Below, piece by piece: positions 11,628 to 38,467 of a stretch of DNA of 64,000 nt. The stretch lies in NCBI GenBank assembly GCA_020891255.1, contig BQFW01000008.1, positions 2,728,001 to 2,792,000 of the forward strand, read 5' to 3'. Position numbers and translations under genes: made by a program. Each line of letters starts with the position of its first letter. The first letter of the stretch is position 1. Origin of the DNA: Entomortierella parvispora E1425. Taxonomy: Eukaryota; Fungi; Mortierellomycota. Below the pieces are notes generated by a model. That model made no database searches, was not told the origin of the DNA, and saw nothing but the letters and a program-made list of their open reading frames with translations.

Positions 11628-13851
11628 TTAATTCCATGCGTTTGCGGAGAGGATATCGTTTGAATTACTTGTGTGCAAGGCGGAAGTTTCCCCTCCATAT
11701 GAAGATCCATCTGTCCCCGCTGCTGTTTCGCTGGAAGGATGGTCCAAGGTCGACTGCCGCTGTTGCTGTTGGTGCTGTTGGTGGTGTTGTGGTTGCTGCT
11801 GCTCCTGTTGTTGATGGTGCTGAGTCTCCTCCCCTGCGCCACTCAATGCCTTGAAGTAGTTTTCCCAGAGACCAACAATCTCCCGTTGGTGCTTGACCAT
11901 ACTGGCCAAGAACGCCTCAACGCTCTGTTTAAAGTCCTCGACCTTTTCCCGATCGAAGCGATCAAACTCTTGACGGATCAAACTCGAAATCTCTTCAAAG
12001 TCCTTTTTGCTCGTCTCCACGCGCTGCTCCGCCTCTGTGATTTCCTGTGAAAGTTGCTGAATCTTTTCCGGTTTGGTCTTGCGACTGGGTTGGTTCATCT
12101 TGTCAAAGTTGGCCTTCTTTTTTGAAAGATCGTTCTGGGCCAAGACCATGGTCTGGTTGAATTTGGCTCGGGCCATGAATGCAATCTTGATCGATCCAAT
12201 AGTTCGGATATATTCGTCCACAGTGTGTTCCAACGTCAGCACGTCCATGTGCGCCTGCTTGTCATGAAGCTCCTTGATCCGGATCTTGAGATTTCCTAGG
12301 ACTAGTAATGAGTTTGCTAGAGGTTTGTTGAGCTCCGTTCCTGCGAGGGACACAATACTCTCGCCAAATTCGGAGGATGCCACGCCAAGGTCCTTCCGCT
12401 GCTTGATAATCGCCTCAATGGCCTTGAGGAGCGACTTTAGTTGACTGTCCAGAACATCCAGTTGGGTCTTTCTTGACTCGAACCACTGTGAATAATTAAA
12501 ATGATAATAAACACAATTTCCCGTTTTAGATCACACTCTCAATGTCAAGGGTGGGCTGTAGTTGTAGAAAGCCAAATGTCATACCTCATCAGTCTCGTGA
12601 ACTTTGGTAAAAGTAGTTGCACTAGAGAGTGTCTCTCCAACTTTGGTCATGAATCCCTTTGAGCTATCCTGACGCTTTTCCTTGATCTAAATAGACAGCA
12701 GTAACGTTTGCATCAAAAGGCGGCGTCATGCACGACTTGGAATACCTCCGAAGAGCATTCTTTTTTACCTCAGCCACGAGACTGTCGCTCTCCAGGAAAA
12801 GCTTGAGATCTGGATCGCCATAGAGCATAGGGTGCGCCGTCATTTTTCGAAGACATCTCTCCAGTGCGATACGTCGGCTCTCCACAAACTCGTCTTGGAA
12901 TCGACCCAGTGCATGCTTCTCTGACACGGGTGGCACAATGACGCCTGGGTTGTGTGCTGTCAGTTGGTTGTAAAGCCACAAAAAGTCCCTGTATCTTCTC
13001 TGCACTGTGAAATCATTCGATTTGTACGCTGAGGAGTTTGTCTATTGGAGAAATAGGCAGCCATCTTGTTAGATTCATATTCGTCATCTGCCACCCATTT
13101 GGGTGGTGGTGCGATTCTAAAAGACATACCCGAATGTGCACTTTGTAGACAATATGAGGGCTGATGACGTCGCCGATCTTTTGGGGCTCTCCCACCGTAA
13201 TTTCAAACCAGGGAAGGACCCCATTTTCTGGAAGGCGCAGAGACGACATCTAACAACAGCCCTAGGGTATTAGTTGTTGCTCCGATTTGCACTCAAGTAG
13301 CGCCATTTTTTTTTTACCTGTGATCCCAAAGAGCGTGTGGACGCTGGCCGGAAGGGTCCTGCATCGTCGCTACTCCTTGCACTGTCCTGTCCCTGAGCTG
13401 CAGTCTGTTGATGATCGTCACTGTCATAGCGGGGATTCGAATCGACGCTGCTCCATCTTTGGTGACCACCACTTCCGCTCGTCTCCTGTCCACCCAGAAT
13501 CGGTGCTGCGAACGGGGTCTCTTCTACAGATCCAGCTGCAAGGTTGATGGCTGAAAAGGATTTTTGAAGGTGGGCTCCCGATCCTTCTGTGATGTGATCC
13601 TCGTTATCATCGTCGTTGTCCTCGTGGTGGCGGTGGACGTCAGTCGACTGGGGGTAGTACTCGTGAAAGTTGAGCGACTGCGAGGTCCTCAAAGTGGACG
13701 AGATGGCAGAGCCGCTGAGGGCGTCATCTGCAAAGGGATTGGATTCTGAGAAGGGATCGATGAAAGTGGAGGCATCAAGAGTGGTGCTTCCTTCTGCTGA
13801 TGTAGTGCTTCCATGAAGCAGGTCCGAGACAGAGTGGGTGGGGGATGTCAT
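11628..13851 (-). CDS. VPS5: Retromer sorting nexin Vps5/SNX1-2 (PX + BAR), multi-exon
   Basis: PX motifs FEITVGEPQKIGD..HIVYKV, VQRRYRDFLWLYNQL, PGVIVPPVSEK, RFQDEFVESRRIALERCL; BAR C-terminus QEFDRFDREKVEDFK..VGLWENY. Confidence 0.9.
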
Positions 13852-14159
13852 TGGGTCGTTCTTCCACTGAGTGGTGCGTGTGTGTCTGCGTGTGTCTTGA
13901 ATGGATGCGCTGTTTGCTTCCTTATATGCTGTTATGTTGTCTGTGCTCCTGCTAGTCCTTGTGTTGACCTTGGTGATTGTCTCCTTGCTTGCTTGTACAA
14001 AAGATGGGAAGGAATGTGAGTTGAACGGAAGAATGAAACGCGACACACCATGGAGTGCCTTGCATGGCATGGCACGGGTTCACTTTCTCGATGGTCACGT
14101 GCACCCAGATCCCCACTTTTTTTTTTCTCTCTGCTGATCTGAATCCCTGATCAGCTCTG

Positions 14160-17100
14160 CTCATGACGACTCGTTCGTCCCCAGTCCTTTCATCCATTCA
14201 CCAGTATCACTGACGCCGTTGTATTCTTTTTCTCTTCTGTATGTTTATTGTTCGTTTGCATCGTATCAATATGAAGATAAAAAATAAAAACTTGCCTCTA
14301 GACTTTTGGAAGCACAAAGAAAAAGAACACAAAGGTTAGTTTTTGTTGGCTTCACAAGCGTTGCCGCTTTTTTTTCTTTCATTCAAAGAAACAGAGGGAA
14401 AGGGGATGGATTTTCAGTTGGGTGCAATAACTATCAACACTGTGATTCAGGCGGTAATTCCAGCTTTAATTGCGTTTGTATCATCATAGTTGTCCGATGT
14501 AGGTTGGACAGTGGAAATTGGAGGGAAAGGTGAAATAGGCGAGCCATTGAATAAAAGGCAGAGAAACGACAGACTTACAAATTACATGTTCAAAACAGAC
14601 AGGTTGGAAGAGATGTTGGATGGACAAAAGGAATTGGAAGGGCGGAAGGGTGGAGGAGTAAGGGAAAGAAGAAAACTCTGCCATCGATTCACAATGCCAC
14701 TTTTATACTGTAAGGGACATTAAGACTGCGACAATAGTTGAAGCCACCCATTTCGGTGTTGTTGTTGAAAATGAGGCAGAACATCAAGGAATCAAAGAAC
14801 GGAGACGCGTCCTCCTTATAGCCTGTTGCCAATTGGCCAAACCCCCAAACTCAAAAAGATCACTGCAAAACCCAAAAAAAATCCAGCAAAAAAAAAATCC
14901 ACAGACAAACAAGACGATAGCACGCGTCCCCGTTCGCAAAGGGGCACCGATTGGATGCTGGGGGACCGGGCGAATAGAGGCCAGTAAAGGATACACAGAG
15001 AAGAATAGACAGAGAGAAGATGGGGCAAACAATTCAGTTCAGAAATGCTCAGCAAGAACAGCAAGAAGGAAGACTGACTATCGAGCGGCTCGCAGCTCTC
15101 AGGTCGTCAAGACCAGTTGTGCAAGCAGGTATACCCGCGGAAGGGTATGTTGTTTCAAGAAAGATGTCTGTGCCACCATCTCGCCCGCCATCAATTGGTC
15201 ACAAACTGTTCGTGTCCGAACTTTGCGCTCTCTCCTCGCTCGTTCCTCCAATGCCTTTTCCATCTCTAACACAAAAAACCACCGAGTGAGCAGAAGCAAA
15301 GACCTATGTGGTTCCAACAACAACAGGAGATGTCGGCAGGGATAAATCTGACTTTGAACATCTATTGAACACAGGCCAAAACGCACACTAAGAAGCAGAT
15401 GAAAAAGAAGAAGACAAGGAATGGAAAAAAGATTGGGTGCATGGGCGTCGATCATGGACTCACTGACTTGCCCCCTGTTCTTATTCACTCCTCCTTGTGG
15501 CCAGCTGCAGCTGCACCTCTCAACGACCAACCAGCAGCGAGCAACCACTCTGAGCACACACACAGAAAGAAGTGCAAGGCAGACAGTTCAATGAGACGAA
15601 CAAGCACGCACGAGTCTGGCGCCAAAAGTAGGGGTACAGAACAGAGAGCAGAAAAAACAAAACAGACAGGAACCGGTCTAACCCACCACTCGCGCGCTAC
15701 CAGTGGGATGGCATGGTCGTATCGACCTTTCCTTCTTCCTCCCTTTCCTTTCTACCTCGCACTTCCCGCTTTCTCCCTCCATTCCTGTTCGCCGTCGACA
15801 TATCACCCCTCCATTCGTCTTGCTCAATTTCCACTTTTTTGGGTTTTTTTTGTTTTTCTTCTTTTCCTCTTCTCCCTTTTTTTTCCCTCTCTTCGGCTCT
15901 TTCCTCCTTCCTCCCCGACCCGTTCACAGAGTACAGGGGCAACATGTCCTTCGCAGCTTCCGCTGCCTTCATCGGCTCCCCCCCCCACTCTCTATGTCTA
16001 CTATTATTCTTGTGCAAATACTGCCGCTCCTTCAGGGTCTCTGTTCGCCCTTGCCATTAGTGAGCAGGCCAACAGTACATCGATGGTGATTCAAGGGCAG
16101 GGTCTAAATGTCCAGGGATCCAGTCCTATAAAAACACCCATAGGAGCCTGGATGTTCCCCAACTCGCAAAATCAATTTATATTACTCCTGGATCAGTCAC
16201 CACCAGCGATAATAACGTTGCAGCCTCAGTCGACACCAGTTATCCCTCTCGCACAAGTTCTCTGGAACGGAACTAACAATGCGAACTGGACATTCGTCGA
16301 TCAATCAGGGGCACCTGGACTCCTTCCCTCGGGACTTACGCAGCTCTGGACAGCTTCTGGAAATACTACTGGAAGTGCTGAAGGCTCAGCGGTGTATGAA
16401 ATATATTCTGCAGCTCTAACAGACGGCGGACCACTTCCATTTGTCAACAAGCTGGATATTTCTAACGTAGTGAGTGGAGCTCAGTCGACATCCTCTTGGC
16501 TCAAGCAAGCAAATGGCGTTGACGCCACATCATCCCCACGAGTGGTTCGTTTGCTTGGAAATGTATCTACAGGCGTGAATGTAGCTGCTGTAGGGAAATG
16601 TTCCACGGCCGGCACATGCTTGGCTTTCTTTGCTGATTCGGGCTTTGGGGTAAGAAAAGTGAGAGGGCAGCTGTGAAGTGCCAGACAACGTGAATTGCAG
16701 TCTCCCTCGTAGCGCATCAACTTGTTGAATGTTTCCCAACTAAAAACTCGTCGTGCAAATCTTACCCTTGATAGGTCCAAGTACCTCAAACATCACCAAC
16801 ATACGACCCTACCGGCTGTGTCACATGTATGACCTTGAAGTTTTCAATGTTGTCAAATGAAAAGATGTGAAGAACTGACGATGAATACGATCCTTAATTT
16901 TCAGCGACTAGCGGCTCGACCAATTTGATCATTATGGTTACAACATCAGGTGTGTTCACTTTCAACTACGGTGCAGCCAACCTGCAGACTACTCCCTGGG
17001 TCAACGTTTCGAAATCCACACTTCCAAGCGCAGTCCTATCGTGCGGTGTTAGTGGCTCTAAACTGTATGCTGTTCTTCAAGGTAAAGAGAATGACCAGAA

Positions 17101-17955
17101 AAAAAATAGCTTTTCCGAATAATTCCAGTTCCCTTCAAACTTACCAACATCCTACGAAAAATATATTGTTGCATCAGGCGGTTCTATGCCCGCCATTCGT
17201 ACCGCATCAATGTCAGCAACAAGCTGGGAATGGCAAACCGCAACTTTGGTCCAACCCGTAGTGCAAGCTTCGCCCTCACCGCCAGCTACAGGATCATCAG
17301 GTGATAGTGGTGGCGCCCCTGGTTCTGGTGGTAGTAATGGAAGCAACGGCAGTAGTACAAATCCTAACGACAGCTCATCTGGAAGTAAAACAGGCAAGGG
17401 TGTCATCATCGCAATCGCGATCGTCGCCGCCTTGCTCCTGATTCTCATCCCGATCCTGATTCTCTGGTGGTGCCGCCGCAAGCGCCAGAACGACAAGAAG
17501 TACGAGGAACGGACCAAGGAGCTGAAAAAGTCTATTGTGATGGATCAAGATGGTGGGAAACGCATGTGCTCGTCCCTGCCTCTGCCCCGCGCGATTCCTC
17601 GTGCCCCCCAACATTCCCCTGTCACGTTCTACTTGGAGACCCCTGGGGCCACCCCTGCCCTCGGCGGTATGACCCTGATCGGCCATGACCGTAGCAGCCA
17701 CTCGGGATCGTCTAGCATGCCGGGCTCGAGCACGATGAGCTATGACGAAAGGCTGTCAGTGCACCCGTCGCACCCTTCGATGCAGTCTCTGCCGTCGATA
17801 CAGTCTCCCACGATGCAGTCTCCGCTACAAATGCAGGCTCAGCCATCGATCCAGTCCTTGCTGCATCCTTATCAGCAGCCCTCCAGGACTTGGTCGCAGG
17901 ATGGTGGCAGCGTGGCCAATGACGGCTCGCCCTCGCCCAGGACCTTGAACCCCTC
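14160..17955 (+). repeat. Tandem duplication unit A (~3.8 kb): upstream region plus membrane-protein gene copy A
   Basis: ctcatgacgactcgttcgtccccagtcc begins at both 14160 and 17953, and the following ~1.7 kb is colinear with small indels. Confidence 0.9.
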
Positions 17956-17959
17956 ATGA
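15944..17959 (+). pseudogene. Single-pass membrane protein copy A: +1 frameshift in a C9 run and C-terminally truncated (join 15944-16649, 16775-16826, 16905-17081, 17178-17959)
   Basis: Exons 2 and 3 (52 and 177 nt) equal those of copy B; total 1717 nt = 3n+1 because of C9 at 15978-15986; TM IIAIAIVAALLLILIPILILWW-CRRKR; stop created at the duplication junction. The frameshift may be a sequencing error. Confidence 0.6.
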
Positions 17960-19659
17960 CGACTCGTTCGTCCCCAGTCCTTTCATCCATTCACCAGTAT
18001 CACTGACGCCGTTGCATTCATTTTCTCTTCTGTATGTTTATTGTTCATTTGCATCGTATCAATATGAAAATATAAAAAATAAAAACTTGCCTCTAGACTT
18101 TTGGAAGCACAAAGAAAAAGAACACAAAGGTTAGTTTTTGTTGGCTTCACAAGCGTTGCCGCTTTTTTTTCTTTCGTTTCAAAGAAACAGAGGGAAAGGG
18201 GATGGATTTTCAGTTGGGTGCAATAACTATCAACACTGTGATTCAGGCGGTAATTCCAGCTTTAATTGCGTTTGTATCATCATAGTTGTCCGATGTAGGT
18301 TGGACAGTGGAAATTGGAGGGAAAGGGGAAATGGGCGAGCCATTGAATAAAAGGCAGAGAAACGACAGACTTACAAATTACATGTTCAAAACAGACAGGT
18401 TGGAAGAGATGTTGGATGGACAAAAGGAATTGGAAGGGCGGAAGGGTGGAGGAGTAAGGGAAAGAAGAAAACTCTGCCATCGATTCGCAATGCCACTTTT
18501 ATACCAAGACATGAAGACTGCGACAATAGAAAAACGCGTCCTCTTCATAGCGCTGTTGTGAGGCGTGACTTTTTGCCAATTGGCCGAACCCCCCAACTCA
18601 AAAAGAGCAGTGCAAAACCCAAAAAAATCCAACAAAAAAAAAATCCACAGACAAACAAGACGATAGCACGCGTCCCCGTTCGCAAAGGGGCACCGATTGG
18701 ATGCTGGGGGACCGGGCGAATAGAGGCCAGTGAAGGATACACAGAGAAGAAGAATAGACAGAGAGAAGATGGGGCAAACAATTCAGTTCAAAAATGCAAC
18801 AGCAAGAAGGAAGACGGACTATCGAATGGCTCGCAGCTCTCAGGTCGTCTAGACCAGTTATGCAAGCAGATATACCCGCGGAAGGGTATGTTATTTCAAG
18901 AAAGATGTCTGTGCCACCATCTCGCCCGCCATCAATTGGTCACAAACTGTTCGTGTCCGAACTTTGCGCTCTCTCCTCGCTCGTTCCTCCAATGCCTTTT
19001 CCATCTCTAACACAAAAAACCACCGAGTGAGCAGAAGCAAGGACCTATGTGGTTCCAACAACAACAGGAGATGTCGGCAGGGATAAATCTGACTTTGAAC
19101 ATCTATTGAACACAGGCCAAAACGCACACTAAGAAGCAGATGAAAAAAAGAAGACAAGGAATGGAAAAAAGATTGGGTGCATGGGCGTCGATCATGGACT
19201 CACTGACTTGCCCCCTGTTCTTATTCACTCCTCCTTGTGGCCAGCTGCAGCTGCACCTCTCAACGACCAACCAGCAGCGAGCAACCACTCTGAGCACGCA
19301 CAGAAAGAAGTGCAAGGCACACAGACAGTTCAAGGTATGGCGCCAAAAGTAGGCCAGGGACACAGAACAGAGATCAGAAAAAAACAAAACAGACCAGACA
19401 GGCACCGGTCCAACACCCGCGCGCTGCCAGTGGGATGGCATGGTCGTATCGACTTTCCCTCTTCCTCCCTTTCCCTTCAACCTCGCATCTCCTGCCTTCT
19501 CCCTCCATTCCTGTTCGCCATCGACATTCATCCCTCCATTCGTCTTGCTCATTCCCTTTTTGTTGTATTTTTGTTTTTGTTCTTTTCCTCTTCTTTCTTT
19601 TCTCCTCTACTCTTTCTTCCTTCCTCTCCCCGGCCTGTCTTAAAGAGTCCAAGGGCAAC

Positions 19660-22600
19660 ATGTCCTTCGCAGCCTCCGCTGCCATCGTCGGCCCCAACCT
19701 TTACGTCTACTATTACTCTTCTGCAAATACCACCGCTCCTCTGGGATCCCTATTCGCATACACTGCCCCCAATGCAACTTCGAATACACTGTTGTATACA
19801 GGACAGAGTCTCATCAACTCGGGGCCCAATCCTGTAAAATCTCCCACCAGTGCCTGGATGTTCCCTAATTCGAAAAACCAGTTGATCCTCCTCCTGAGTC
19901 AGTCATCGCCAACGATATTGTCATTGCAACCTCAGTCCCAGCCTCAGCCACTCGTCAACCAAGTTCCCTGGAACGAGACTGGCATCAACAATGTGAATTG
20001 GGCTGTTACAGATTTGTCCTCGGTGTCTGGACTCGTTCCCGCAGGCCTTTCACAACCGCAAATCTCGATTGCTTCAGGAAATTCAGGAACTTCAGAGGGC
20101 TCGGGGATGTATGAGCTTTACTCTGCTCTTGTGCAAACGGCTTCGCAGCTTTATATAACCAAATTAGATATCTCGAACGGTGGAGCCGGGGTGATATCCT
20201 TGTGGCCAAGGTCTATTGGAAATATTGATCCTACTTCGTCTCCACGAGTGGTTCGTCTGCCTGGAACCTCAACTATGGGTGTGGATGTAGTTGCAGTAGG
20301 AGGGTGCCCTCCTACTAACAGCTCAAATCCAGGAGGAACGTGCCTGAATTTTTTTGTCGACGGAACCTTTGGTAACGCGGTAAGCTCAGCGTGAGGAGAA
20401 ATGAGAAAAGGATGGAGAGAGCATGTGTCTGTGTGCAATGTGGTTTTTGCCACTGTACGTTTTGCCGCTTTGGAAGGTAGTCCTGAAGCTCTGAACCCAG
20501 CCCCTCTTTGCTCACTCCTTCACTTCAGAGGGGCTGGGCGCAAATCTCACCCTTTCCTATGGATGACCCAAAATAATTTTTTCGTCCAAAAAAGGAAAAA
20601 AAATTCTCTGATAAATAGTGTAATTTAAAAACTTTAAATAAATTCACTCTAATAATAATAAAATAGTGAGAGTAATGCCAGCCATGCAGCCATGCCATCG
20701 CTCGTCGCCCGGCTTGAATGGGGTTAATTTCTTCCATTTTTTCATTTTTCATCGCCACCACTTTCTTTCATAAACCCCGCGTTCCGATCTTGCATTCAGC
20801 TCCTGCCACCTCTTCTTTATACCCTTCATCTGATTAAATGACAAAGATGGCAAGCAAAAGACCAATCGAGCAGAGGTGAGGAGACGCGTCTCGGGTGTCC
20901 ATGATGCTCAGAGTCGCCCACGCGTCCATCTGCTCATTTTTCTTCATCTCTTCATATTTTCTGTTGTAGTCATGATGCTCTTAGCAAATCTGATCAAGAT
21001 ATCCCGGGAACGCCGAGAAGATCGCGTAGCACCAAGGTGAGTAGCTTGATGTGGTGCCTGGTGGCCTCTTCCTGGTGTGGCCTCTTCTAACTCTGTGATT
21101 TACAATAGGGTGAGGGACGATTTCGTCTTGATTCCCCAGGTGCTCCTCCGCGAACCCCGCAAACAACACAAACCCCACGAGCACCACGAGCACCACGAAC
21201 TCCACGAACCCCGCGCACCTCACAAACCTTACAAACGCCAAGATTCATACAGTCACCAATTGTGGCCAACCAAGTATGAAAAAAATCGTTAAAAAATATG
21301 TGCTGCTCGCGTTTTTCTTTTCTAACAGATGTATCCACCTCCTCCCATTCATATCGATTAGGGAACTACCAATGGTTCTGGTGCTACCGATATGGCCCAA
21401 CCTTTACCCTTTGTCATGGAGGCACAGGCTCTTTCTCCGACTTCTCAGGCTGCGTACATTGGAGGATCAACGCAATTCAACATTGGAAAAAATTCGACGC
21501 CACCCATCACTGGAGAAGAACCGCCACGACTCAATGTTGGAGAGAATTTGACGCGATCCAATGTTGGAGAAGAATCGCCGCGACCCAGCAATGCGTCGGA
21601 GGAGTTGACGTTCGATCCTTTCTGTGATAACACTGATGGAGAACCAATCATGACGTGGGGTTCTGATAACTATTATGTAAGAACCCCTTTGAGGAAAAAG
21701 TGGTCATCGATGCAGCCATCGTCATCAGCTCCTTCTTCACCCGCCAATTCTGTCGGCTCTCCGTTGCAGTCATTCTCGTCACCATCAAATGCGGTTCTTA
21801 GCCAACCTTTACCGTTTATACAAAAAAAGCGATGAACGCGAAGACGAGAGTGATGTCCAGGTAAGTCGAGTTTAATTATGAAATGGCGATGTTCTGGACT
21901 TGCATTAACTCTCACATTAAAATGCATATATGTCTGTAATCTTCATACTGCAGGATCCATTATGTAAAGAGGCTATTCAAGCTTGCCGAAAGCGTTTTCA
22001 TCACTCACCAAAGGAGGAGCAGCTTCGTGTTGTCAAACATATATACAACAAGCAGGATTGCTTACTGCTTGCGCCCTGCGGGTGGGGAAAAACACTTGTA
22101 TTTTCTCTGCCAATGGTGATGTGGAAGGACAAGATTACGGTCGTCATTTCGCCGTTGATTGCCCTGATGCAGGATCAGATAAAGGTATGCCAGCATACAA
22201 TATACCAGTCTAACAGGTATACTTTTTCTAACATATCGCGCAATGCGACCCTGTGTTAATACTCTAGAAACTCAAAGAAAAGGATGTCACTTGTTTGCTA
22301 CTCTCGACCTACAACGGCAATCGAGTTAACGACAGTGACATTAAATTAGTTAAGGAGGGACATTACAGAGCTGTGTTCATGTCGCCAGAAGTCATTTTCG
22401 GGAAAGGATCTACTGCATGCAAGGTTCAGGACCTTTGGAACAATAAGTATTGGAAAAGTCAACTATGCTCCATCGTCGTAGATGAAGTCCACTGTGTAGA
22501 TAAATGGAAAGATTTTCGGCCGTATTATTCGCAAATTGGATCATTGCGTGGTAAGGTACCTGGGGTGCCGATCGTAGGCCTGACTGCAACCCTCCCACCC

Positions 22601-25600
22601 GATTCGCTCCAGGAAATCAAGAATAGCGTCTTTCTCGCCTCGTCCACCGTTCATGTCATTCGTGTGGATGACATTCGTGATAACATCCAGCTCGAAGTTC
22701 ATACCTTTTCACTAAGGAATCGAGTCAGACAACTGGCGAAGTTGCTGGACAATACAAAGACGATTGTCTATTTTGACAGCATCGCACTTCTCAGAGATGT
22801 ACAGGACAAGTTAAGGCCATTGAGGCCTGATCTGCGAATGGACGCATTTTTCTCAACCCGCCTTAGTTCTTCCAAGGATAAAGTCCTGCTCAAGTTCATT
22901 AATAGCGAGATTGATGTCCTGTTGGCTACTGATGCCTGCGGCATGGGATGCGATATCTCAGATGTTATCACTGTGTTCCAATATGAGTAAGTTGAAACGT
23001 AACTAAGGTTGGACAATGCGGATGAAATGAGAGACGATCTTACTTACTTCAAGATATTTTCAATGATATGAAGTCTGCCTCACGATTTGACGAGTCTTGT
23101 GCAGAGGTTCGGTCGAGCAGCGAGGGGTCCTGGAACTAAAGGCTTTGGGATCCTCTTGGCGCCTCCAACTACCAGCAGGAAATACAACAAGAGACCTGAC
23201 ATCTTAAATTTCGTTGCCCCCCAATTGACAAGGACAAGGACAAGGAAAAGGACAAGGAAAAGGACAAGGACAACAGTCGGAGGAAATGTCGGTGGCATGT
23301 GGTGGATGAATATCTAGGGAACAAAATATCCTCTCGTACCAAATGTTGTGATGTATGTCTCGGTGAGTCTTGTCGCCGCAAGACGACCGAACTTACTGGT
23401 CAAATTGGGCCCGAACTGACTATACCAAAGGGGAAGAGCGCGGACAAAGATCAGGATGTAGGGAGGAACAGGTTATTGGAGTGGAGGAAGAACGAGTGCA
23501 AAAAATGGACAGGAGAAGAAGTGTCCTTCGTGGACTTCGAGCTTTGCGTTTTGCCCGATAAAGTACTCGCAAGGTTGTGCTACAAGCTCTTTGCGGCCAC
23601 CACTACTGAAATGGTGAGGTTGATAGCTGACAGCTGTGATTTTGTGCCAGTGGATTGCGATCATTTTGAAATGATCGCTGAGGTTGTGGCGAAAGCCCTG
23701 GGCGAGATAGAAAGTACGAAAAATGATCAAAATTCCTTGGTAGTCGAAGAATAGCCCATCAATTGACCGAGCCAAGATGACAAGGAGATGGAGTCACTGC
23801 TTGCATCTGATGACCCTGCACAACCAAACATTTACAGCCGGCCGGGCCATTTAACATCGCACGAGCCCAGGTCCCATTCATTCATTCTTCTTTAGTTAGT
23901 ATTATTATTGTCATAAAATATCATTCAGCTACAACATGGTCGTTGGCCTCGACTTCCTCCATATCCACAGTATCGTAGCTATCGCTTTTTCTGAGAAAAC
24001 ATGCTATAGCACTCTCTGCCATTTTGTGCGCGCCAACAGTTTGAAGGTCAACTACCACGGATGGAGAAGGCCGAGTGTCTTGCTTGGATGCCCAAAGGAT
24101 TCCACAGAACTGGAGATTGTCTCTGACAAGCTCAACATCCTCTTTCGTGGATGGTTTTTTGTGAGCAGTGCTGTTGTACTTGGTTTCTATCTCCCGTTCG
24201 AAATTACGTGCAATGGTTTGAAATATCTCGACGTTTGTTGAGATTTGTTCGCGAAGATAGTCCCAGCTTGCGTTTGGCCCTTTCGCTGCATGAGTGGCTT
24301 TGAGGAGGAAGTTGATGATTTCTTGGTACATGTCCGTTGGCATCCATGCTTGAGGAATGCCTTTAGGGTTCACCAGCATGCTTGAAAGGACCCTGTGTTC
24401 CCATTCACGCGTCCACAGGTGGCGCATGCCGTGGAGAAATCGTAGTAGCTCAAGGGCATATTTGGAATTGCCTCCGCCGTGCATCATCAATGCCACGGTT
24501 GGTAGCACACATCTTATCCGCCCAAGATCGCCAGCCTTAATAGCAGCAGAGAGTTCGATGAAAACGATCATGTCTCGGAGGAAGAGAAGAGCATTGATAT
24601 CTGCTGGAGTGCAGGGCCGGCCATTGAGCAAGGGATTGGCATGCTGCAGACTAGCTATGGCGTAAATGACAAGATCAACGAATCTTGTCATGTCAGACTC
24701 CACTGAGGTATGAAGATCTTCCCAGAGTACCATTGACATTGCGTCGAAAACAATCTTCAGCAGTTCACTGGTTGGCTTGTACTCCGGTTTATCCGTGTTA
24801 AAGCCTTTACTGGCCAATAGGGAAATGAATGATGCAAGTGAGCCTGGGGTATTGGCATCGGCGCCAAGATGTGTCTTGTAGATCGTGGAGCAAAGTGTCA
24901 TTTGGAGATGGAAGAGCTGAAACGTAGGATGTACCCAACCAAGACTGCCGAATGGATCCGACTCAACCATGCGGTGTACCTTGAGAGATAAAAGTCTAGA
25001 GACAGTCATCTGATCACCGGCCACTATGATGTCCCTGGTGGTCTTGCTGAACCATTCATCGCTTAAGCCGAGATCTATCTTTGTTATGTTTTCCAGCACT
25101 GCGAGATTTCCGGCAATAGTCGACTCATCGATCTTCATGGTTGGCAATGGAAAAGTTTTCGTCTTAACAACCTTCAGTACGTCAATGGCCGGCATGGGAA
25201 TCACGCAAACACTGGGTGATCGAGGCAAAAACTGCGAAATGGCAGTCGACAGATGTGTGCGGCAGGCAGCCCTAGTCATGGTGCGGTCGGTGCTTGTGGG
25301 GAAAAAAATGCTGGCGCTTGGCTCTGGCCTGTCCACTCTGAAGCAAACCATTGGGGATGATCGAGGTATTTCAGCACTCCTGGAGCTCCCGAGATTTGAG
25401 CTGTCGGGAATCAGAATCACGGTAGCAGCTGTGCCGTTGTCGAACGTGTCTCTTTTTCCTACTCTCTGGTGATGGTGCCTTGTGGCAATGTTGATGTTGT
25501 CGTATACAATGTAAAAGTCGTTGTTGAGGACTGCCACCTTCACCCTCTCCTGTGCGTCTTTGGTCAAGGCCTTCAATGCCCTGTGAATCTGATCATATGA

Positions 25601-28600
25601 CACGCAAAGTCCAAGAGCCGACAAAGTCTCTAAAACTCGTCTGGGAGCTCCCAGGCAGTGAAGATAGATGCCCATTACCATCTGAAAAGCATTGCATTGC
25701 TGGGATCTCAAGAACATGAGCATAGCAGAGATGCAGCCACGAACAGAGCTGGGTTTTTCGACCGCGCCTGCGAGCAGGTGTAGCGCTTCCCACAGTTTCT
25801 TCATCATTGTTGCCGATGTTGTCACTGCCGTTGTTGACGGTGTTATCGCCGTTGCTGTCGATGTCGTTGTCGCCGCTATTGTCGCTGTTGTCGCTGTTGC
25901 TCTCGGTGTCGTTCTCACTGTCGTTGCCGTTGTTGTTGCCTTCGTTTACTCTGGTGCTACCATCGCCACTGTTCGTACCATTTCCCTTGCTAAGCATGCC
26001 GTCCAAAAGTCGTGTCAAAAAAGAAGCTTCGCCGGCGTAAGAGTCGAGAAACCCGTTCCTGAGGATCTTATCGATATTTTCCTCCGACATTCTATTGTGC
26101 GGGAATCGGTAGGCTGGGTGTGGGCCATCGTCACCTACGACGCCGTTCTTGAGGCGATCAAGCTCCCGTTTAGTCCTTGAGACAACGACGTCTACAGCGC
26201 TGTTCACAAATGGGGCATCCCATTCTTTGATCTTGCGTAACTTTTGGCTCCAAATTTTGATAACGCGACGAGGACCGTCTTTGTGATAGAATTGATGAGT
26301 CCAGCGCTTGATGTTTTCATCTTGAGAGTTAAACAGCTTCTCGAAGAAGGCGGGAAGTGAAAGCTGTTGTTCCCTGATGTAGTTAAGAATCATTGCAACT
26401 TTGTGGGTAGAGGAATGCTAAAAAGAAAAATAATTGTTAGACGCCTGTGGGAGTGACATATTGCTGGTTTCTTTGGACAACCGGTCTTCACATACATGCG
26501 GCTTCCTTGTTGATCCGGGCATTCGATCCTCTCCATTGGTCGCTCTGAGTGTGGGGGAATCGGGCATGCACATCTATACGTAATTCGTAATTCACTTGAG
26601 AGGTAATTCATAAATTACGATAAGGATGTTTTCGAAACCATGTGCTGAATTTACCTGCAGTGTCGATGAGTTGAACTGCTCCTCCATGTCGGCCGTTAAA
26701 GTCCTAATCCTATCACTGAATTTCACTGCATGTTAGAAATTTGCGTAAACCTGGGGGCAACTAAAGTTGCGACAGGGTAGGCAGGTTGGGGTATCTCATG
26801 CTTACGCGAACTGAGGGGTGCTCAGATTCCTAGATCGTCGCGAGTTTTTTCTTGTGGGGGTCCTCATGTAATCGTTCCCAGAAACCCATATCATCGGCGT
26901 CTCTGTTCGATTACTTCCTAATCTCCGAAGCCAGAATGGGCTATCGAATGGCTCTCCATCAGTGTTGTCACAGAAAGGATCGAGCAGAGACTCCTCTGAC
27001 GCATGCTTGGGTCGCGGTGATTCATCTCCAATGCTGGGTCGCGGCGACTCTTTTCCAATGTTGGGTGGCGTCGAATTTTTTCCAATGTTGAATTGCGTTG
27101 ATCCTCCAATGTACGCAGCCTGAGAAGTCGGAGAAAGAGCCTGTGCCTCCATGACAAAGGGTAAAGGTTGGGCCATATCGGTAGCACCAGAACCATTGGT
27201 AGTTCCCTAATCGATATGAATGGGAGGAGGTGGATACATCTGTTAGAAAAGAAAACGCGAGCAGCACATATTTTTTAACGATTTTTTTCATACTTGGTTG
27301 GCCACAATTGGTGACTGTATGAATCTTGGCGTTTGTAAGGTTTGTGAGGTGCGCGGGGTTCGTGGAGTTCGTGGTGCTCGTGGTGCTCGTGGGGTTTGTG
27401 TTGTTTGCGGGGTTCGCGGAGGAGCACCTGGGGAATCAAGACGAAATCGTCCCTCACCCTATTGTAAATCACAGAGTTAGAAGAGGCCACACCAGGAAGA
27501 GGCCACCAGGCACCACATCAAGCTACTCACCTTGGTGCTACGCGATCTTCTCGGCGTTCCCGGGATATCTTGATCAGATTTGCTAAGAGCATCATGACTA
27601 CAACAGAAAATATGAAGAGATGAAGAAAAATAGAGCAGATGGACGCGTGGGCGACTCTGAGCATCATGGACACCCGAGACGCGTCTCCTCACCTCTGCTC
27701 GATTGGTCTTTTGCTTGCCATCTTTGTCATTTAATCAGATGAAGGGTATAAAGAAGAGGTGGCAGGAGCTGAATGCAAGATCGGAACGCGGGGTTTATGA
27801 AAGAAAGTGGTGGCATTGAAAATGAAAAAATGGAAGAAATTAACCCCATTCAAGCCGGGCGACGAGCGATGGCATGGCTGCATGGCTGGCATTACTCTCA
27901 CTATTTTATTATTATTAGAGTGAATTTATTTAAAGTTTTTAAATTACACTATTTATCAGAGAATTTTTTTTCCTTTTTTGGACGAAAAAATTATTTTGGG
28001 TCATCCATAGGAAAGGGTGAGATTTGCGCCCAGCCCCTCTGAAGTGAAGGAGTGAGCAAAGAGGGGCTGGGTTCAGAGCTTCGGTAGTCCTGGGAAATAT
28101 TCTACCGCCTAAGCTTGCACTGAATTTTCTCTTGACAGTTTACATCAGCACAAGCAAGTCCGCCATACGACTCGTCCAGTTGTCTCATAGGTAATTTCCG
28201 ATATGCACCGCTGAGGAAGAAGACGAGCAGGGTTTATTGACGATTAGCCTTCGTGGCTTTATTTCTGGATGTCCAGCCACTAGTTCGAGCAAACTGCTTG
28301 TAATGATTTCCAAGACGGGTACATGGACATTCAATTACGATGTCGAATCCGCCCAACTACAATCGACTCTTTGGAGCTCGGTTTCGAGCGTTTCTCAGGC
28401 AGGGATTTTGTCGTGTGGTATCAGTGGCACACAGCTGTTTGCTGTTTTTGGAGGTAAAAACGAACGATAGGATACGTAGAAAACATCTGAGTAGAGGTCA
28501 AAGTGAGGGAGGGTTGAAGCGATTCAAACAGTCTCCATACCAGCGTGCCCATTGTTTCTAATAGTCAGCCTATTCTTGTCGTGAAAACTATAGGCAGTGC

Positions 28601-29894
28601 TCAACCCACTATCAAGACTGCACAAATGACAGCAACATCTTGGACCTGGCAAACTCCTACTCTGACCCAGCCTTCGCTTCTGCCCTCGCCGCCACCGCCG
28701 CCTACAGGATCATCAGGTGATAGTGGTGGCGCCCCTGGTTCTGGTGGTAGTAATGGAAGCAACGGCAGTAGTACAAATCCTAACGACAGCTCATCTGGAA
28801 GTAAAACAGGTTTGGGCAAGGGTGCCATCATCGCAATCGCGATCGTCGCCGCCTTGCTCCTGATTCTCATCCCGATCCTGATCCTCTGGTGGTGCCGCCG
28901 CAAGCGCCAGAACGACAAGAAGTACGAGGAACGGACCGAGGAGCTCAAAAAGTCCATTGTGATGGATCAAGGCGGTGGAAAACGCATGGGCTCGTCCCTA
29001 CCTCTGCCCCGCGCGATTCCCCAAGTGCCCCCAAGGCATTCCCCTGTCACGTTCTACTTGGAGACCCCTGGGGCCACCCCTGCCCTCGGCGGTATGACCC
29101 TGATCGGCCATGACCGTAGCAGCCACTCGGGATCGTCTAGCATGCCGGGCTCGAGCACGATGAGCTATGACGAAAGGCTGTCAGTGCACCCGTCGCACCC
29201 TTCGATGCAGTCTCTGCCGTCGATACAGTCTCCCACGATGCAGTCTCCGCTACAAATGCAGGCTCAGCCATCGATCCAATCCTTGCCGCATCCTTACCAG
29301 CAGCCCTCCAGGACTTGGTCGCAGGATGGCGGCAGCGTGGCCAATGGCGGCTCACCTTCGCCCAGGACCTTGAACCCCTCCCCCCGGACCTTGAACCAGC
29401 AGCACCAGCACAGCTTCAGCGACAATGAAAGCACGGCGGGACCTGGGTCCGTTGATGGATACCATTCCGACGCGCGTCTGAGCCGTGGTGGTATCTATGA
29501 TGACAAGCATGAGATCATGAGCCCTGACCGAGACCCGTATGGACACCATGAGCGCTCGACCACGAGCATGAGCTACCTGAAGAGTCCTGCCTTGACCGAA
29601 TTGGAACACCCCCGCTCGACCACGACGATGAGCTACATGAAGAGTCCGGCCTTGACGGACTTGGAGCCGCCCATGCCCCTCATGTCCCCCATGTACTCGC
29701 CCCCCGCCCATTACCAACACTCGAGCACGGACAGCGCCGTCACGGCCAACTCGACGCTGGGCGCTCCTATGGTCCAGATGGCGACCAAGCCTAAACGCAT
29801 CCGGATGGAGGACATGGTCTCCCCAGGCCTCATCAACGCCCAATTGATCCTCCAGCAGTCGCAAAAGCCTCAGAAAGTGTCCAGCCTCCGTTAA
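19660..29894 (+). CDS. Single-pass membrane protein copy B, 749 aa (join 19660-20379, 28139-28190, 28277-28453, 28594-29894); transposon in intron 1
   Basis: Canonical GT-AG sites give an open 2250-nt frame: S/T/N-rich putative ectodomain, G/S linker, TM helix plus RRKR, and a long S/P-rich tail. Confidence 0.8.
20476..20484. repeat. 9-bp target-site duplication GGTAGTCCT (left)
   Basis: Identical 9-mer directly abuts both TIR ends (20476-20484 and 28083-28091). Confidence 0.95.
20485..21506 (+). repeat. Left terminal inverted repeat (1022 bp)
   Basis: Reverse complement of 27062-28082; the few differences found (near 20745-20755, 20935, 21315) are all outside the predicted exons. Confidence 0.95.
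20838..23754 (+). CDS. Transposon-encoded RecQ-like SF2 helicase, multi-exon, starting in the left TIR; two homopolymer frameshifts
   Basis: Motifs APCGWGKT (I), VISPLIALMQDQ (Ia), VDEVHC (II), LTATL (III), LLATDACGMGCD (V), QRFGRAAR (VI), and Zn-like CRWHVVDEYL..CCDVC. Frameshifts at A7 21822-21828 and C6 23217-23222. Confidence 0.85.
23921..27730 (-). CDS. Academ-type (DUF6589-like) DDE transposase, multi-exon, starting in the right TIR; one homopolymer frameshift
   Basis: Candidate catalytic motifs IVYDNINI, VAGDQMTV, FQLFHLQM, PTDMYQEIIN. ORFs 25593-26393 and 23921-25918 join by removing one base at T5 25754-25758 (RRRGRK-PSSVRG). Confidence 0.8.
27062..28082 (-). repeat. Right terminal inverted repeat (1021 bp)
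   Basis: Mirror ORFs in the track (e.g. 21077-21292 + vs 27275-27490 -) and direct base comparison. Confidence 0.95.
28083..28091. repeat. 9-bp target-site duplication GGTAGTCCT (right)
   Basis: Matches 20476-20484. Confidence 0.95.
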
Positions 29895-30441: not shown

Positions 30442-33400
30442 CTATTTGTACCCATCGCCAACGCCGCATCGTTCCGGATTGGGTTCATTACCGGCCCAAG
30501 TGGGAAACTCGACCGCGCCTTTGAGGATCAGGGCAAAGACAACAAAGATGGCCATGTTGCAAATCTGTGTGCCCGCATCCAACGCCGCCGCAAGCACGAA
30601 CGTGTACCTCCGCCACCATTCATGGCGGTACCGCAGGACCACGAACGCGAAGATAAACGCGACCACGCCGGCAGAGACCACGAAACTGGCGGGTGCCTGG
30701 GGCACAAAACTGGCGCCTGCGCAGACCAGAGGCATGTTGACCAAGTGCCAGGGCACACGACGGAGGCAATACTCGAGTGATCGAGAAGAATAGGAAGCTG
30801 GGTCGTGGAGGTTGTGCGGGTCGTGGTGGGTACGTGAGGAGCAGGATCGACCTTCGTAAATATGAGGTGGGAGGGACACTTTTTCCTTGGACTGCAAATA
30901 GTCCAGATTCGATTCCTCTGCTCCTTTTTTTGATGCGTCTTTGGACAAACCTGACAAGGGCCAACAGTCTTTTCTGCCTTGTCTCGATGATCGCACTGGT
31001 TCCATGTGCGCCGTAGAAGAGGACAGTCCAGAGGGTTGGTCGCGGCGATCGGTATGATGGGGCTTGGGATAAGTAGCCGTGCTTGTCTCTCCAAACGCAA
31101 CTTCAGAGTCTTGATGGATGGCCTTGGAAGGGACACCCCCCGACTCGACCGTAGCCTCTGAGATGTGAGCCACAGAGGGGCAGGTACACTTTGGCAAAAA
31201 GAATAGCAACGGCGACGAGTCTGGACTTATTCCCTTGCAATAGGAACCAAACGGAGGGTAGTGTCTTGAGAGCAAATAGAAAGGGACCGGGATGAATAGA
31301 CCGAGGACAAAGCACAGCGGGAGGAAATGGTAAATGGATGAAGGAGCAAAGAGCCTGGTCGGGGAAATTGCGCCCCACAGGAGTGACGCAGAAAAGAAGA
31401 GATCCAGGTTACGAAACGACCAACCACTAACGCGATCAAAATAAAATTAAAGAAAAAAAATCCCCCGAAGGGAAAAAATTAGCAACGCAATTGTTGCCCA
31501 ACCCTTTCGAATCGTGCTCCTCCTCTCCTTTTCCTCTCCCCTTCGTCACGAGAACCCTAATAAATTACCTTCTAGAGTCAGCATCGAACAAGGCTTGACG
31601 ATTGTAGAGCAGGACCCAGTCCAAGACCTTGATATTGACAAAGGCGCCCACCACTGTTCCGTAGATGACGGTGATCAAAATCTTCCTAGGGGGCACCTTC
31701 ATGTAATGACCCAGTTTGAGTCCCTGGGTCAAGTTCATGCATTGGTAGAGGGTCATGTAACTGTAGCACTTAAAGACTGAGTTGGCGAGTTGGTTGCCGG
31801 CTATGGAATCCATAGAATTGGGAGTGCGAAGGCACGGTAAGCAATCGATTCAAGGATTCGCGTTGGTCGTTGACGTGAGATCTTACGCAAGAGGTAGCCA
31901 CAGACCACTTCGCTCAGCACATTGAGTCCAATCTGAGAACTGGAGAGCGCTTGGATAATGGCCATTGGAATCGCGAAAATGGCAGAGAGCAGCAGTGCAA
32001 TGATCAGGGCATACACGGGCAGGTGGATATCGGACGTATTGCAGACCACAACTGACATCACAAAGCACAACACAAAGAGTGCTCCGAACCACCGTCCAGG
32101 GATCTAGAGTGGATTGAAGAGAGAGAGGTCAAAATGCTGACCACACTCTTGTTAAGCAATTGAATAGGCAAGACCATACTTACCTCGGGGTAGACCTTCA
32201 TCAACCGCGTGTGGATATCCTCAGTGCCAAACATCTCTGTCGGGATCTGCTCCCACCGCGCAATCTCCTCGCGCTCTCTCTCGGTCAACTGATGAGTAGG
32301 TCCTGCAGCTGCGGAGGCACCACCTGCAAGACCAGCGGCCATAGAGGCGGCAAGCTCCTGTTGTTGGGACAACTGGCGGTAATGAGACGACTGATGGAAA
32401 CTCTGTCGATCCTCAGCGCCTCCCAGTCCTGCGATCCCTCCAATCCCAGATCCACTATCCAGAACATTAAGATCATTCCTGAACGACACCGACTCGCTGT
32501 TCTTGCGACTGCCTCGAACGCTTCCACTGCCAGCGATGTAAGCTGTAGTGTCACTGATCCTAGGAGGAGCATCGAGTTCCTCATGCAACGATCCAATCGA
32601 CATGGGTGCCAACTCCAGAATACTCAACTGCGTGGAAGGGGTATGAGTTTGGTTGGATGCTGTTATGGTCGTGTCTTCCAGCTCGTTCGCGTTTGAAAAG
32701 CGAGCTTGAATTCCTTGGACAAGTTCTGATTTCTGTATCCTGGCCAGCCTTCTCACAGTCCTCGTCTTGGCGATCAACCAGATATCTGGTCCATAATAAA
32801 GCGCCACATGAACAAACGTAGCCATGACAGCCATAAAGCTTGTTCCATAAGTGATTGCGAAGTAGGGTGTCATGATGATGGGCGAGTACGACTCATACAT
32901 GGTCACATTGAAGGTCAGATCGGGGTTGACAATCTTGGAGATATCATAGAGCTGTGCCTTGTTATCAAAGAGATTGGAGGACACAATCGGGTACGACATG
33001 GCGGACCAGTAGTTGGTAAAGTAGATGAGTGGAGTAATGAGCCAGAGCATGAGGATCAATCCCACGAAAAAATTGCATTGTGCCCACTATGTGTAAAGAT
33101 GAATCCACTTGTTAGGTTTTTTTTCTGTTGAAGAACAGCTCTACACCAGAACTTACCCAAGGGGTGAACAAGGGACCGACGCCACTGATGATCGACCAAT
33201 CTAGCGAGATGCAGCCCATCCCTAGACCAGTATATCCACTGCCGAGCTTTCTCAAAACATTGCTTGACGGCTTGATCCAGCAAAGCAACGCCATCGAGGT
33301 CAAAACGGGCATGAACATCCTTGGGAGCCATTGGTACAGAAAGATGGCCAAGAAAGCGTACCAGAACAATTGCATCCTGGTGAACCATCGCGTCAAAACC

Positions 33401-36400: not shown

Positions 36401-38467
36401 TCGACCACTCTTCCCATGACAGTTCCCTGATCCCGCTCCTGATCCTGGTCCTCCTTGACTTGACGCAGGTAAAAGTTGATGGCTCATGCCCCCGACTGCA
36501 GATGCTGAAATAGAAGCACGAAGGTGGGGATAGGCGTCGTTTGGGTAGGGGGTGGATGTCCCGTTGTGATAGCCTCCAGCCAGCATGGGTCCTTCTGAAC
36601 CAGCAGAACTAGGACCCCAGGAAGGAGAATAGTGGCCGAGATGGGACAGTCCTGGCAGTGCAGGTGGATCGTATTCTGAGGCATCGGCCGAGCTGGGGGC
36701 ATAATCTGATTGCAGAGTATGCAAGGTGGTGGTGCTCCCACCAGCAGCAACGGCAGGAGCAGTGGCAGTGAGATGGAGTCCAGGGTGGTTGGGCAGGTCG
36801 CTGGTGGAGGTAGTATTGCTGTTGGGGCCACTTCCGAGTTGATAGAGCGGATGGGCAGCAGGAGAGGATGAAGGGATGGAAGAGAGGTTGAGGAAGGAGT
36901 GGTTGGCATGCTGGTAGAGTGTGTGAATGGTGTTGTGATTGCTGTGCGTGGTGCTGTGAGTGTGACTGGGTGGGGAGGACAGGCTGTTCCCAGGGGACGA
37001 CGGTCGCTTGGCCCAGACCGATCCAGGGGTCGATGTCTCTGGTCCGGGTGTCTGATTCCCACTAGCGTGATGTGCTGCACACGATGGTTGATGTAGATGG
37101 TGGTGCTGCTGCTGCTGCTGTTGTGATTGACCTCCTCCACCTGCACTCTTGTGGCAAGGACAGGATCCTGTTGTAAAGGATCCGACCCCTGATACGGGTG
37201 TCATCGAGAAGGGAGAGGCCAGGCTCGATGTGCTCTGTGAGTGGGGGCCATGATGACCGTTGCTAGCGCTGTTACTTGAGATGGAGGCAAGGGTGCTAAC
37301 GGATGGAAGGGTGAGCGAAAAGTTGAGTTCATCTTGCTGCTGCAGCTGCATCTGCATCATGCGCCATTGATCCATCGATCCAGGGGTCTTTGGAGTCGCC
37401 GTCATCCCTGTCCCTTTCCCTGTTGTTCCTGTCAAAGACGATGTGGGGGTGGGATAGCCCGATGCATGATGATGTTGTTGTTGTTGATGATAGTAGTGGT
37501 GAAGGGGCCCAGGGGTTTTAGGGGTGGCAGGCGTTTGAAGCGTATGAGGGTGCTGTCCGTGAAAGAGATGACTGCTTTGGAAGGAAGAAGGGTGTTGATG
37601 TGCTGGACGCCCGTTGTTTGCAGTTGTCTTGGACGTGACAATCGCAGGCGGAATAACAATGTCCGATCGCAACGGGCGTTGTCTTCGCGTTTCAGGGACG
37701 ATTATCGGGGCAGGGGTTGTTGTGCTTGTAGAAAGAGCTGTTGCAGGATGAGAAGGGACAGGGGGAGCATTGCTATTGTTGTTGTTGTTTTTGCCGTCAT
37801 TATTGTTGTTGTTGTTTGTGTCGTGGAGGGAGGCAGGGGACAAGAGTGCGTGAGATGCAATGGAAGAAGGGCCAGCAACCGTTGGTGTTGTTATTATGGA
37901 TGTTGTTCCAAAAGCTGTAGAGTGGATCGAGGCGTTTCCACTTGCAGGAGTCGCAGGAAAGTAAGAGGACCTGGCCGAGTACGGGGTCATGAGTCCATTG
38001 GCTCCTCCTGCTGGCGTTGCCGGCGTGCCTGGCGTCCTGGCGGTTGAATGAGTCGAGGACGATAGCAAAGCTGGATCCTGTGGAGGACGAAATTGGGCCA
38101 GGTTGAAATGGTGTGACACAGTCGTTGTTGACGGGAGAGCAACGGCATCTTGGTCCATGTGGGTGACACCAGTTGAGCCATTGTTCTCGCGATGGACAGT
38201 GGATGGATCGATCTCCTGTGGTGGATGATGTGGGCCGTGGTCTTCTTGTTGCTGCTGTTGTTGCTGGTTCGGTTGTTCTGACGACTCGGTTGTGGAGGGT
38301 GCTATCGTGTCTGCGGGTTCACTTCCAAAGGTGCCCATGCCAAACTCTTTTTTGCGCCGGGGCATGGAAATGACCACCGTGGCCTTGGGCGGCTTGGGTG
38401 CCTTTGGTTCCTTTGTCTTTTTCTTTTCTGATTTCTCGGTCCCATTTGACTTTGCCCAACTGATCAT
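30442..38467 (-). CDS. OPT-family oligopeptide transporter with very long low-complexity N-terminal extension, multi-exon
   Basis: OPT motifs NSPIQVVRATV, DDPSLPCFTFRMW, LNPGKFNMKEH, DIHTRLMKVYPEV, LKLGHYMKVPPR, YTFVLAAALDAG. Exon 38467-35834 splices in phase 0 (GTAAGA..CTAG) to 35744, in frame with ORF 33729-35657. The 5' exon linkage is less certain than the OPT core. Confidence 0.8.

Follow-up and report, generated by a model that had tools for sequence, protein, structure and literature searches.

How can two neighbouring genes of one genome be almost identical at both ends and, between these ends, as different as genes taken from separate taxa? The question is raised by a tandem gene pair of the soil fungus Entomortierella parvispora E1425 (Mortierellomycota), on contig 8 of an assembly of 38.9 Mb in 20 contigs; the window analysed is the stretch of 64,000 nt from 2,728,001 to 2,792,000 of that contig, and positions are counted from its first letter. 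The assembly was built from Nanopore reads with SMARTdenovo, polished with Nanopolish and Pilon, and annotated with AUGUSTUS aided by RNA-seq (PMC8759367); the Nanopore and Illumina reads are deposited as DRA010776 and the RNA-seq as DRA013164. Gene 1 (G1, copy 1 of the repeat) and gene 2 (G2, copy 2) encode a membrane protein with a predicted N-terminal β-propeller, a stalk, a transmembrane (TM) helix and a tail. They are probably old tandem paralogs, the flanks of which have repeatedly been gene-converted while the propellers escaped. A preliminary description of this DNA had proposed an ancient divergent ectodomain recombined into a common backbone, as expected for balanced allorecognition or adhesion alleles.

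Mosaic structure and segment ages

Self-comparison by blastn places a unit of ~3.8 kb twice in direct tandem (Table 1), the second time in two pieces (17956-20484 and 28083-29380); the direct self-matches pair 14160-16594 with 17953-20300 and 17201-17955 with 28617-29380. In the profile of identity between the units, computed in 100-nt windows, the upstream region of ~1.4 kb is 92-100% identical across most of 14199-15590 and ~2% diverged overall, the centre (15885-17250) lies at 45-66%, about 60%, and 17251-17942 is at 85-100%, with the homogenised stalk, TM helix and tail from 17286 onwards at 91-100%. The 3' boundary (17286 in gene 1, 28702 in gene 2) is abrupt, 36 of 60 positions being identical before it and 107 of 107 after it, and falls within exon 4, at the passage from the propeller to the Ser/Gly stalk. 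The 5' boundary is graded across the 5' untranslated region (UTR), from ~99% up to 15555 through 80-89% over 15685-15885 to ~60%, and the switch is complete ~12 codons into the coding sequence (CDS). The divergent block, from about codon 12 to 17285/28701, corresponds exactly to the predicted six-bladed β-propeller domain. Within it the exon-1 peptides of G1 and G2 share 54% identity, and the introns are essentially unalignable, their alignment being barely above that of shuffled sequences (z 2-3.9).

The core observation of the preliminary description was therefore real, the identity profile and the self-blastn search both recovering a mosaic of near-identical flanks and divergent centre. Its figures of ~97% for the upstream DNA and ~50% for the exon-1 peptides, the near identity of linker, TM helix and tail from 17286/28702, the non-aligning introns and the preserved lengths of exons 2 and 3 (52 nt and 177 nt in both genes) agree with the measurements, and the sharp boundary that it described holds on the 3' side but not on the 5' side. 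Inside the otherwise ~98% identical upstream region, a patch of ~180 nt (14709-14890 against 18505-18640) contains a 47-nt indel and scrambled sequence.

Synonymous and nonsynonymous divergence (dS and dN; ω is dN/dS) were estimated by the Nei-Gojobori method (NG86), with the nearest relative, on a 2.4-kb metagenome contig (L009), for comparison. Between G1 and G2, all divergent CDS (325 codons) gives dS 1.26 and dN 0.39 (ω ~0.31) and exon 1 gives dS 1.33 and dN 0.36 (ω 0.27), against dS 0.11 and dN 0.022 (ω ~0.2) for the tail past 17286. Exon 1 of G1 and L009 gives dS 1.15 and dN 0.34 (ω 0.29), exon 1 of G2 and L009 dS 1.18 and dN 0.44 (ω 0.37), and the tail of G2 and L009 dS 1.02 and dN 0.13 (ω 0.13). 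Compared with L009 both segments have a dS of ~1.0-1.2, whereas between G1 and G2 they are strongly discordant (1.26 against 0.11): the two propellers are as old as the split from another taxon and the tails are ten times younger. Such discordance between segments is a classic sign of gene conversion. The proposal of an ancient divergent ectodomain in a common backbone is borne out to this extent, with dS ~1.3 against ~0.1 and upstream DNA ~2% diverged.

The tails are also patchy. The 24 substitutions in the 670-nt homogenised tail are clustered, with no mismatch in 17286-17402 (117 nt), ~8% over 17403-17611, none in 17612-17853, ~9% over 17854-17932 and none in the last 23 nt; the longest mismatch-free run is 243 nt (about 17612-17853; permutation P = 0.0004). 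The flanks show at least three age layers and this, together with the clustering, points to several exchanges of different age rather than to one event.

Maximum likelihood trees, made from exon 1 alone and from separately translated exon pieces placed side by side, unite G1, G2, L009 and a relative from Logan (L010) in one clade with 99-100% support. The best trees join G2 with L009 at 49-61% support, and monophyly of G1 and G2 is not rejected by the approximately unbiased test (p-AU 0.27-0.46), so that the order within the clade is left unsettled; the branches of G1 and G2 in the exon-1 tree are nearly equal (0.42 and 0.46). Overall ω is 0.27-0.31 and the highest 40-codon window reaches 0.60, none exceeding 1, a test weakened by synonymous saturation; the selection signal on the propellers appears to be purifying. 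Both propellers were under constraint, given an ω of ~0.3, intact splice sites and propeller frames free of internal stops. The dN/dS analysis that the preliminary description had put forward for the recognition reading, with ω ~0.3 and no window above 1, does not favour it.

A history consistent with these results can be proposed. The two genes would be old tandem paralogs coding for a single-pass membrane protein, the family of which was found here in Mortierellaceae alone, and short, repeated conversions between the neighbours would keep the upstream region and the stalk, TM helix and tail of the last exon near-identical. The propeller-coding centre, with its three introns, would have been free of conversion since roughly the time at which E. 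parvispora and its nearest sampled relatives parted, either because its divergence is too high for heteroduplex formation, or because the propellers have distinct uses, or both. The present junction would have removed the tail of copy 1, and a very young transposon would afterwards have inserted in intron 1 of copy 2. Conversion is inferred as the process, as is selection keeping the propellers apart, and the fact that the unconverted block is one domain hints either at different uses of the two propellers or at heterology as a block to exchange. Recent conversion between old paralogs, which the preliminary description had itself named as the scenario contrary to its proposal, is the simplest reading of the data. 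Its framing of the two forms as alleles does not fit two tandem paralogs in one haploid assembly, in a family that is single-copy in three other genomes.

Gene models, repeat junction and inserted elements

Each gene has four exons and not three, as had been counted earlier. The gene 1 model is fixed by protein P0003 (EMPS_06531, E. parvispora), and a search with the open reading frame (ORF) of the tail retrieved this protein and two other NCBI-sourced products, all encoded in the window. Gene 2 parallels gene 1 in structure; all splice sites are canonical, and its exons sum to 2250 nt, or 749 codons and a stop. Public annotation splits gene 2 into two false genes, P0004 (244 aa, 19660-20394, exon 1 read into the intron) and P0001 (422 aa, 28620-29894, most of exon 4).

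The fourth exon, the truncation of copy 1 at the junction, its out-of-frame ATG and the transposon of intron 1 were not used in the preliminary description. Unit 1 ends and unit 2 starts at 17953-17955 in a CTC microhomology, beyond which the tail of gene 1 reads into unit-2 upstream DNA and an immediate TGA. The last ~170 tail residues are absent, and with them the SPGLxNAQLILQQ motif that is present in every full-length family member. In addition, the conserved ATG of gene 1 is out of frame with the propeller owing to a 7-nt insertion in the C-run relative to gene 2, and the annotators therefore began the protein at an internal Met; the run of nine C may be a true slip or a residual homopolymer error. 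The conserved Met is taken as the family start because it is preceded by close in-frame stops in four of the five relatives' loci checked, the Haplosporangium locus (L011) having none in the stretch read. The same stops rule out an upstream in-frame ATG (MAWSYR), with a hydrophobic stretch, as the true start or signal peptide.

The transposon lies 105 nt into intron 1 of gene 2, which with it measures 7.76 kb, and is flanked by a target-site duplication of 9-10 bp, GGTAGTCCT(G). Its terminal inverted repeats (TIRs) of 1.16 kb (20485-21649 against 28082-26946, inverted) are 95% alike, and Pfam identifies as cargo, on the minus strand, a DUF6589 ORF (23921-25918) and, on the plus strand, a DEAD/Helicase_C helicase that is split (21930-22990). 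Nine genomic copies were found, the left TIRs of which are 99-100% identical, so that the family is very young and this insertion recent. Each copy has its own right TIR, 95% like the left; the difference between the two ends is thus constant across the family and does not indicate age. The length of the target-site duplication looks more Mutator-like than Academ-like.

The conserved element in the duplicated upstream region is an snR77-like C/D-box small nucleolar RNA (snoRNA), a tRNA scan of the locus being empty. A third copy of the snoRNA (81 nt, 99% identity) is located on contig 9 at 1342809-1342889, and the element is nearly identical in the Haplosporangium locus (L011, 8898-9041).

Table 1. 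Coordinates of the repeat units, genes and inserted or duplicated elements in the window
Feature	Coordinates	Strand	Basis
Tandem unit 1: upstream region and gene 1	14163..17955	+	blastn self-match, identity profile, alignments
Tandem unit 2: upstream region and gene 2 to junction-matching point	17956..29380	+	transposon interrupts at 20485-28082
Gene 1, family-conserved ATG (15944) and C9 run (15982-15990)	15944..15990	+	alignment, relatives' starts
Gene 1 (EMPS_06531) exon 1, propeller frame	15984..16649	+	matches P0003; peptide alignment
Gene 1 exon 2, 52 nt	16775..16826	+	P0003 sequence, splice sites
Gene 1 exon 3, 177 nt	16905..17081	+	P0003 sequence, splice sites
Gene 1 exon 4: propeller end; from 17286 stalk, TM helix, truncated tail	17178..17959	+	P0003, alignments
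Repeat junction, 3-nt microhomology CTC; gene 1 TGA at 17957-17959 from unit-2 upstream sequence	17953..17959	+	alignments
Gene 2 exon 1, 240 codons, propeller	19660..20379	+	alignment; annotated apart as P0004
Gene 2 exon 2, 52 nt	28139..28190	+	splice sites, alignment
Gene 2 exon 3, 177 nt	28277..28453	+	splice sites, alignment
Gene 2 exon 4: propeller end; from 28702 stalk, TM helix, full cytoplasmic tail with C-terminal SPGLINAQLILQQ motif	28594..29894	+	alignments
TIR transposon, 7.6 kb	20485..28082	.	TIRs, target-site duplication, ORFs
snR77-like C/D-box snoRNA, unit 1	14412..14491	-	Rfam RF01181, 51.1 bits against gathering score 50
snR77-like C/D-box snoRNA, unit 2	18208..18287	-	Rfam search

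The encoded protein and its relatives

The predicted order of domains is an N-terminal six-bladed β-propeller, a Ser/Gly/Pro-rich stalk, a TM helix with a basic cluster, and a tail that is disordered up to a conserved terminal helix. AlphaFold, run on a 16-row alignment with P0007 as its first row, models with confidence an all-β domain at residues 1-343, the TM helix at 392-422 and the C-terminal helix at 594-620; the alignment was needed, as the single-sequence model of P0003 reached a predicted local distance difference test (pLDDT) score of only 39.6. Across the propeller the block-mean pLDDT is mostly 75-93, with one block at 57. Foldseek and VIA-align match the modelled propeller to the fucose lectins RSL, AofleA, FleA and AAL at Z 20-21 and to Kelch domains and sialidases at Z 19-20, with 246-276 aligned residues, a root-mean-square deviation of 3.1-4.6 Å and 6-14% sequence identity. 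On this model a six-bladed propeller fold can be assigned but not a family, since lectin and Kelch matches tie; the nearest clusters of the ESM Atlas are fucose lectins (0.81), a weak match and a lead only. The structure prediction that the preliminary description had suggested thus yielded a fold, and its statement that no known family was recognisable still stands: a Pfam scan gave no hit to the propeller at E <= 0.1 (none to PF07938 or Kelch), with sub-threshold matches only in the TM and juxtamembrane part, and a PDB sequence search with the family profile found no significant match.

Four cysteines align in the full-length members and in both copies, and two of them are invariant in all 12 exon-1 rows. 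Together with the stalk and with the basic residues that follow the TM helix, these cysteines suggest that the propeller may face outward. No signal peptide is recognisable, however: the conserved start is without a hydrophobic leader, and in the model the conserved N-terminal MSxxAAAAF forms a strand of the propeller. From this anatomy only, the protein may be a ligand-binding surface receptor or sensor, perhaps lectin-like. It shares with RSL, AAL, FleA/AofleA and Kelch domains the predicted six-bladed fold (Z 19-21), but the fucose lectins are soluble, whereas the present propeller is joined to a TM helix with a long tail, at 6-14% identity and without a profile match. Its layout is that of the Wsc and Mid2 type of fungal single-pass surface sensors: the stalk is rich in Ser, Gly and Pro, basic residues cluster after the only TM helix, and the cytoplasmic tail is disordered; in contrast to these, a folded propeller replaces the mucin-like rod, no WSC or Mid2 Pfam domain was matched in the family proteins, and a recognisable signal peptide is lacking.

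A full HMMER search with both exon-1 peptides returned 12 proteins, and a last word search with the family profile added three annotated Mortierellaceae proteins. Two of the HMMER matches, P0009 (a bacterial Ig_7 protein) and P0013 (a repetitive protein without clear family), were rejected as chance repeat matches. A word-based search with the propeller found nothing but the query, and one with the tail found, besides the two products encoded in the window, only one metagenome ortholog. Scans of Joint Genome Institute metagenomes with propeller and tail queries gave no relative; exact look-ups of the window proteins in other samples were blank, and their 90%-identity clusters were singletons. 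All named homologues are hypothetical proteins of Mortierellaceae (Haplosporangium spp., Mortierella polycephala, Mortierella sp. GBA30 and Dissophora ornata), the others being metagenome or Logan fragments. Propeller identity between species of the family is 30-50%. L010 has 38-40% protein identity to the E. parvispora propellers, and its pyrimidine-rich 5' UTR (1-240) is alignable at 75-78% with 19496-19723 and 15763-16010 of the window.

A genome search found two family copies in the 38.9 Mb, both at this locus; each of the three other Mortierellaceae genomes examined has one copy. This gene stands between a PXA-nexin gene and an OPT transporter gene in Haplosporangium and M. polycephala, and next to other genes in D. 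ornata. In the window, too, an OPT gene follows downstream (30442-38420). The PXA/Nexin_C gene, directly upstream of the family gene in Haplosporangium (L011, 6126-8373) and M. polycephala, is here 32 kb downstream and inverted (61986-63999), and a local rearrangement therefore separates E. parvispora from these two. The present upstream neighbour (12664-14070, minus strand) looks by eye like a different, PX-type gene.

Alternative histories and biological meaning

Several observations weigh against old paralogs with repeatedly converted flanks. Identity is perfect up to the junction on both sides, for 23 nt at the end of unit 1 and for 59 nt at the start of unit 2, which is awkward for a junction dating from the split of the propellers, since conversion seldom extends to the end of homology. 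It suggests that the junction is younger than that split, and the junction may be a later microhomology deletion within a larger, older repeat, or else the joint of the original or of a recent duplication. Copy 1 has lost the most conserved motif of the family and its start is out of frame, yet its propeller is undecayed. Neutral conversion alone would not be expected to give a divergent block with both its limits at those of the propeller domain, as is seen here. Moreover, the data come from a single genome, in which conversion between paralogs is indistinguishable from allelic recombination preceding capture.

Capture of two alleles is the alternative that survives best, although we consider it unlikely. 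The propellers would be ancient, balanced, idiomorph-like types of a recognition or adhesion gene, the flanks would have been homogenised by recombination in the population, and a recent unequal or microhomology exchange between haplotypes would have set both types in tandem. A young junction, an undecayed propeller in a truncated gene and a divergent block that exactly matches the putative ligand-binding domain all fit this history, as do the graded decay of 5' divergence, known around balanced polymorphisms, a G1/G2 split as old as splits between taxa and, weakly, the pairing of G2 with L009 (49-61%). Against it, no second isolate was found in the collections searched, monophyly of G1 and G2 is not rejected (p-AU 0.27-0.46), ω, at ~0.3, exceeds 1 in no window, and the other genomes examined have a single and unremarkable copy of the gene; the flank age layers fit long-running conversion equally well, and a literature search found no allorecognition locus described for the Mortierellomycota. 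It is quite unlikely that, more specifically, the two propellers give alternative specificities to a receptor for self/non-self, mating or partner recognition, predate the species and were united by unequal exchange, with conversion tolerated outside the specificity domain, a situation that would resemble homothallic fungi uniting two MAT idiomorphs.

The het and cell-recognition haplogroups of Neurospora and the MAT idiomorphs are alternative alleles across individuals, with demonstrated trans-species polymorphism and phenotype. Fungal allorecognition and idiomorph loci resemble the present locus in their hyperdivergent block, near-identical flanks and divergence as old as species splits, but here both forms are in one haploid genome and are known from one genome.

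Very unlikely is a recent tandem duplication of the whole unit, followed by replacement of one propeller block with diverged sequence through hybridisation or introgression from a related Entomortierella. It would yield the same mosaic, with a sharp 3' boundary and a young junction, and propeller divergence does equal that between taxa; however, no donor is known, the genome holds no third copy, two crossovers would have to be placed at the domain limits, and the older (~8-9%) and younger (0%) tail patches require extra events in any case. An assembly artefact, in which two haplotypes of a heterokaryotic culture were wrongly joined in tandem by the Nanopore assembler, is highly improbable. The frame-breaking run of nine C is a typical error site of such an assembly, but both copies are on one contig of 3.3 Mb with 409x coverage, the joint between them is a clean 3-nt microhomology in mid-exon, the RNA-seq-informed annotation ends gene 1 at the stop codon just past it, and a transposon with a target-site duplication is in one copy only. 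Recent duplication with very fast adaptive divergence of the ectodomain alone, for which the rapid evolution of family propellers between species (30-50% identity) might speak, is effectively refuted by a near-saturated dS of 1.3 and unalignable introns against a tail dS of 0.11, at ω 0.3, since protein selection cannot saturate synonymous sites or scramble introns.

Conversion between old paralogs has well-known parallels. In the human RHD/RHCE and opsin genes, tandem paralogs undergo partial concerted evolution, with conversion tracts bounded by a diverged core. Those systems and the present locus are alike in the discordant ages of segments, in patches of perfect identity among older ones, in a diverged core that escapes, and in being close neighbours. 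They differ in that the escaping block is here a whole structural domain with its introns, that 1.4 kb of non-coding DNA with an snoRNA is homogenised, and that one copy is truncated at the junction. The locus is best read as a clean, ordinary instance of partial gene conversion, and not as a demonstrated recognition locus.

As such it provides a natural example of concerted evolution that halts where a single protein domain begins and ends, from a phylum of fungi in which there are few descriptions of such dynamics. The locus also delimits an unnamed receptor-like family, found here in Mortierellaceae only, with a predicted β-propeller, a stalk, a TM helix and a tail bearing the SPGLxNAQLILQQ helix. 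If isolates differ in propeller type, this would be the first candidate recognition locus for the Mortierellomycota; if they do not, it would be a duplicated sensor gene with converted flanks, one copy of which has been truncated and the other hit by an active transposon.

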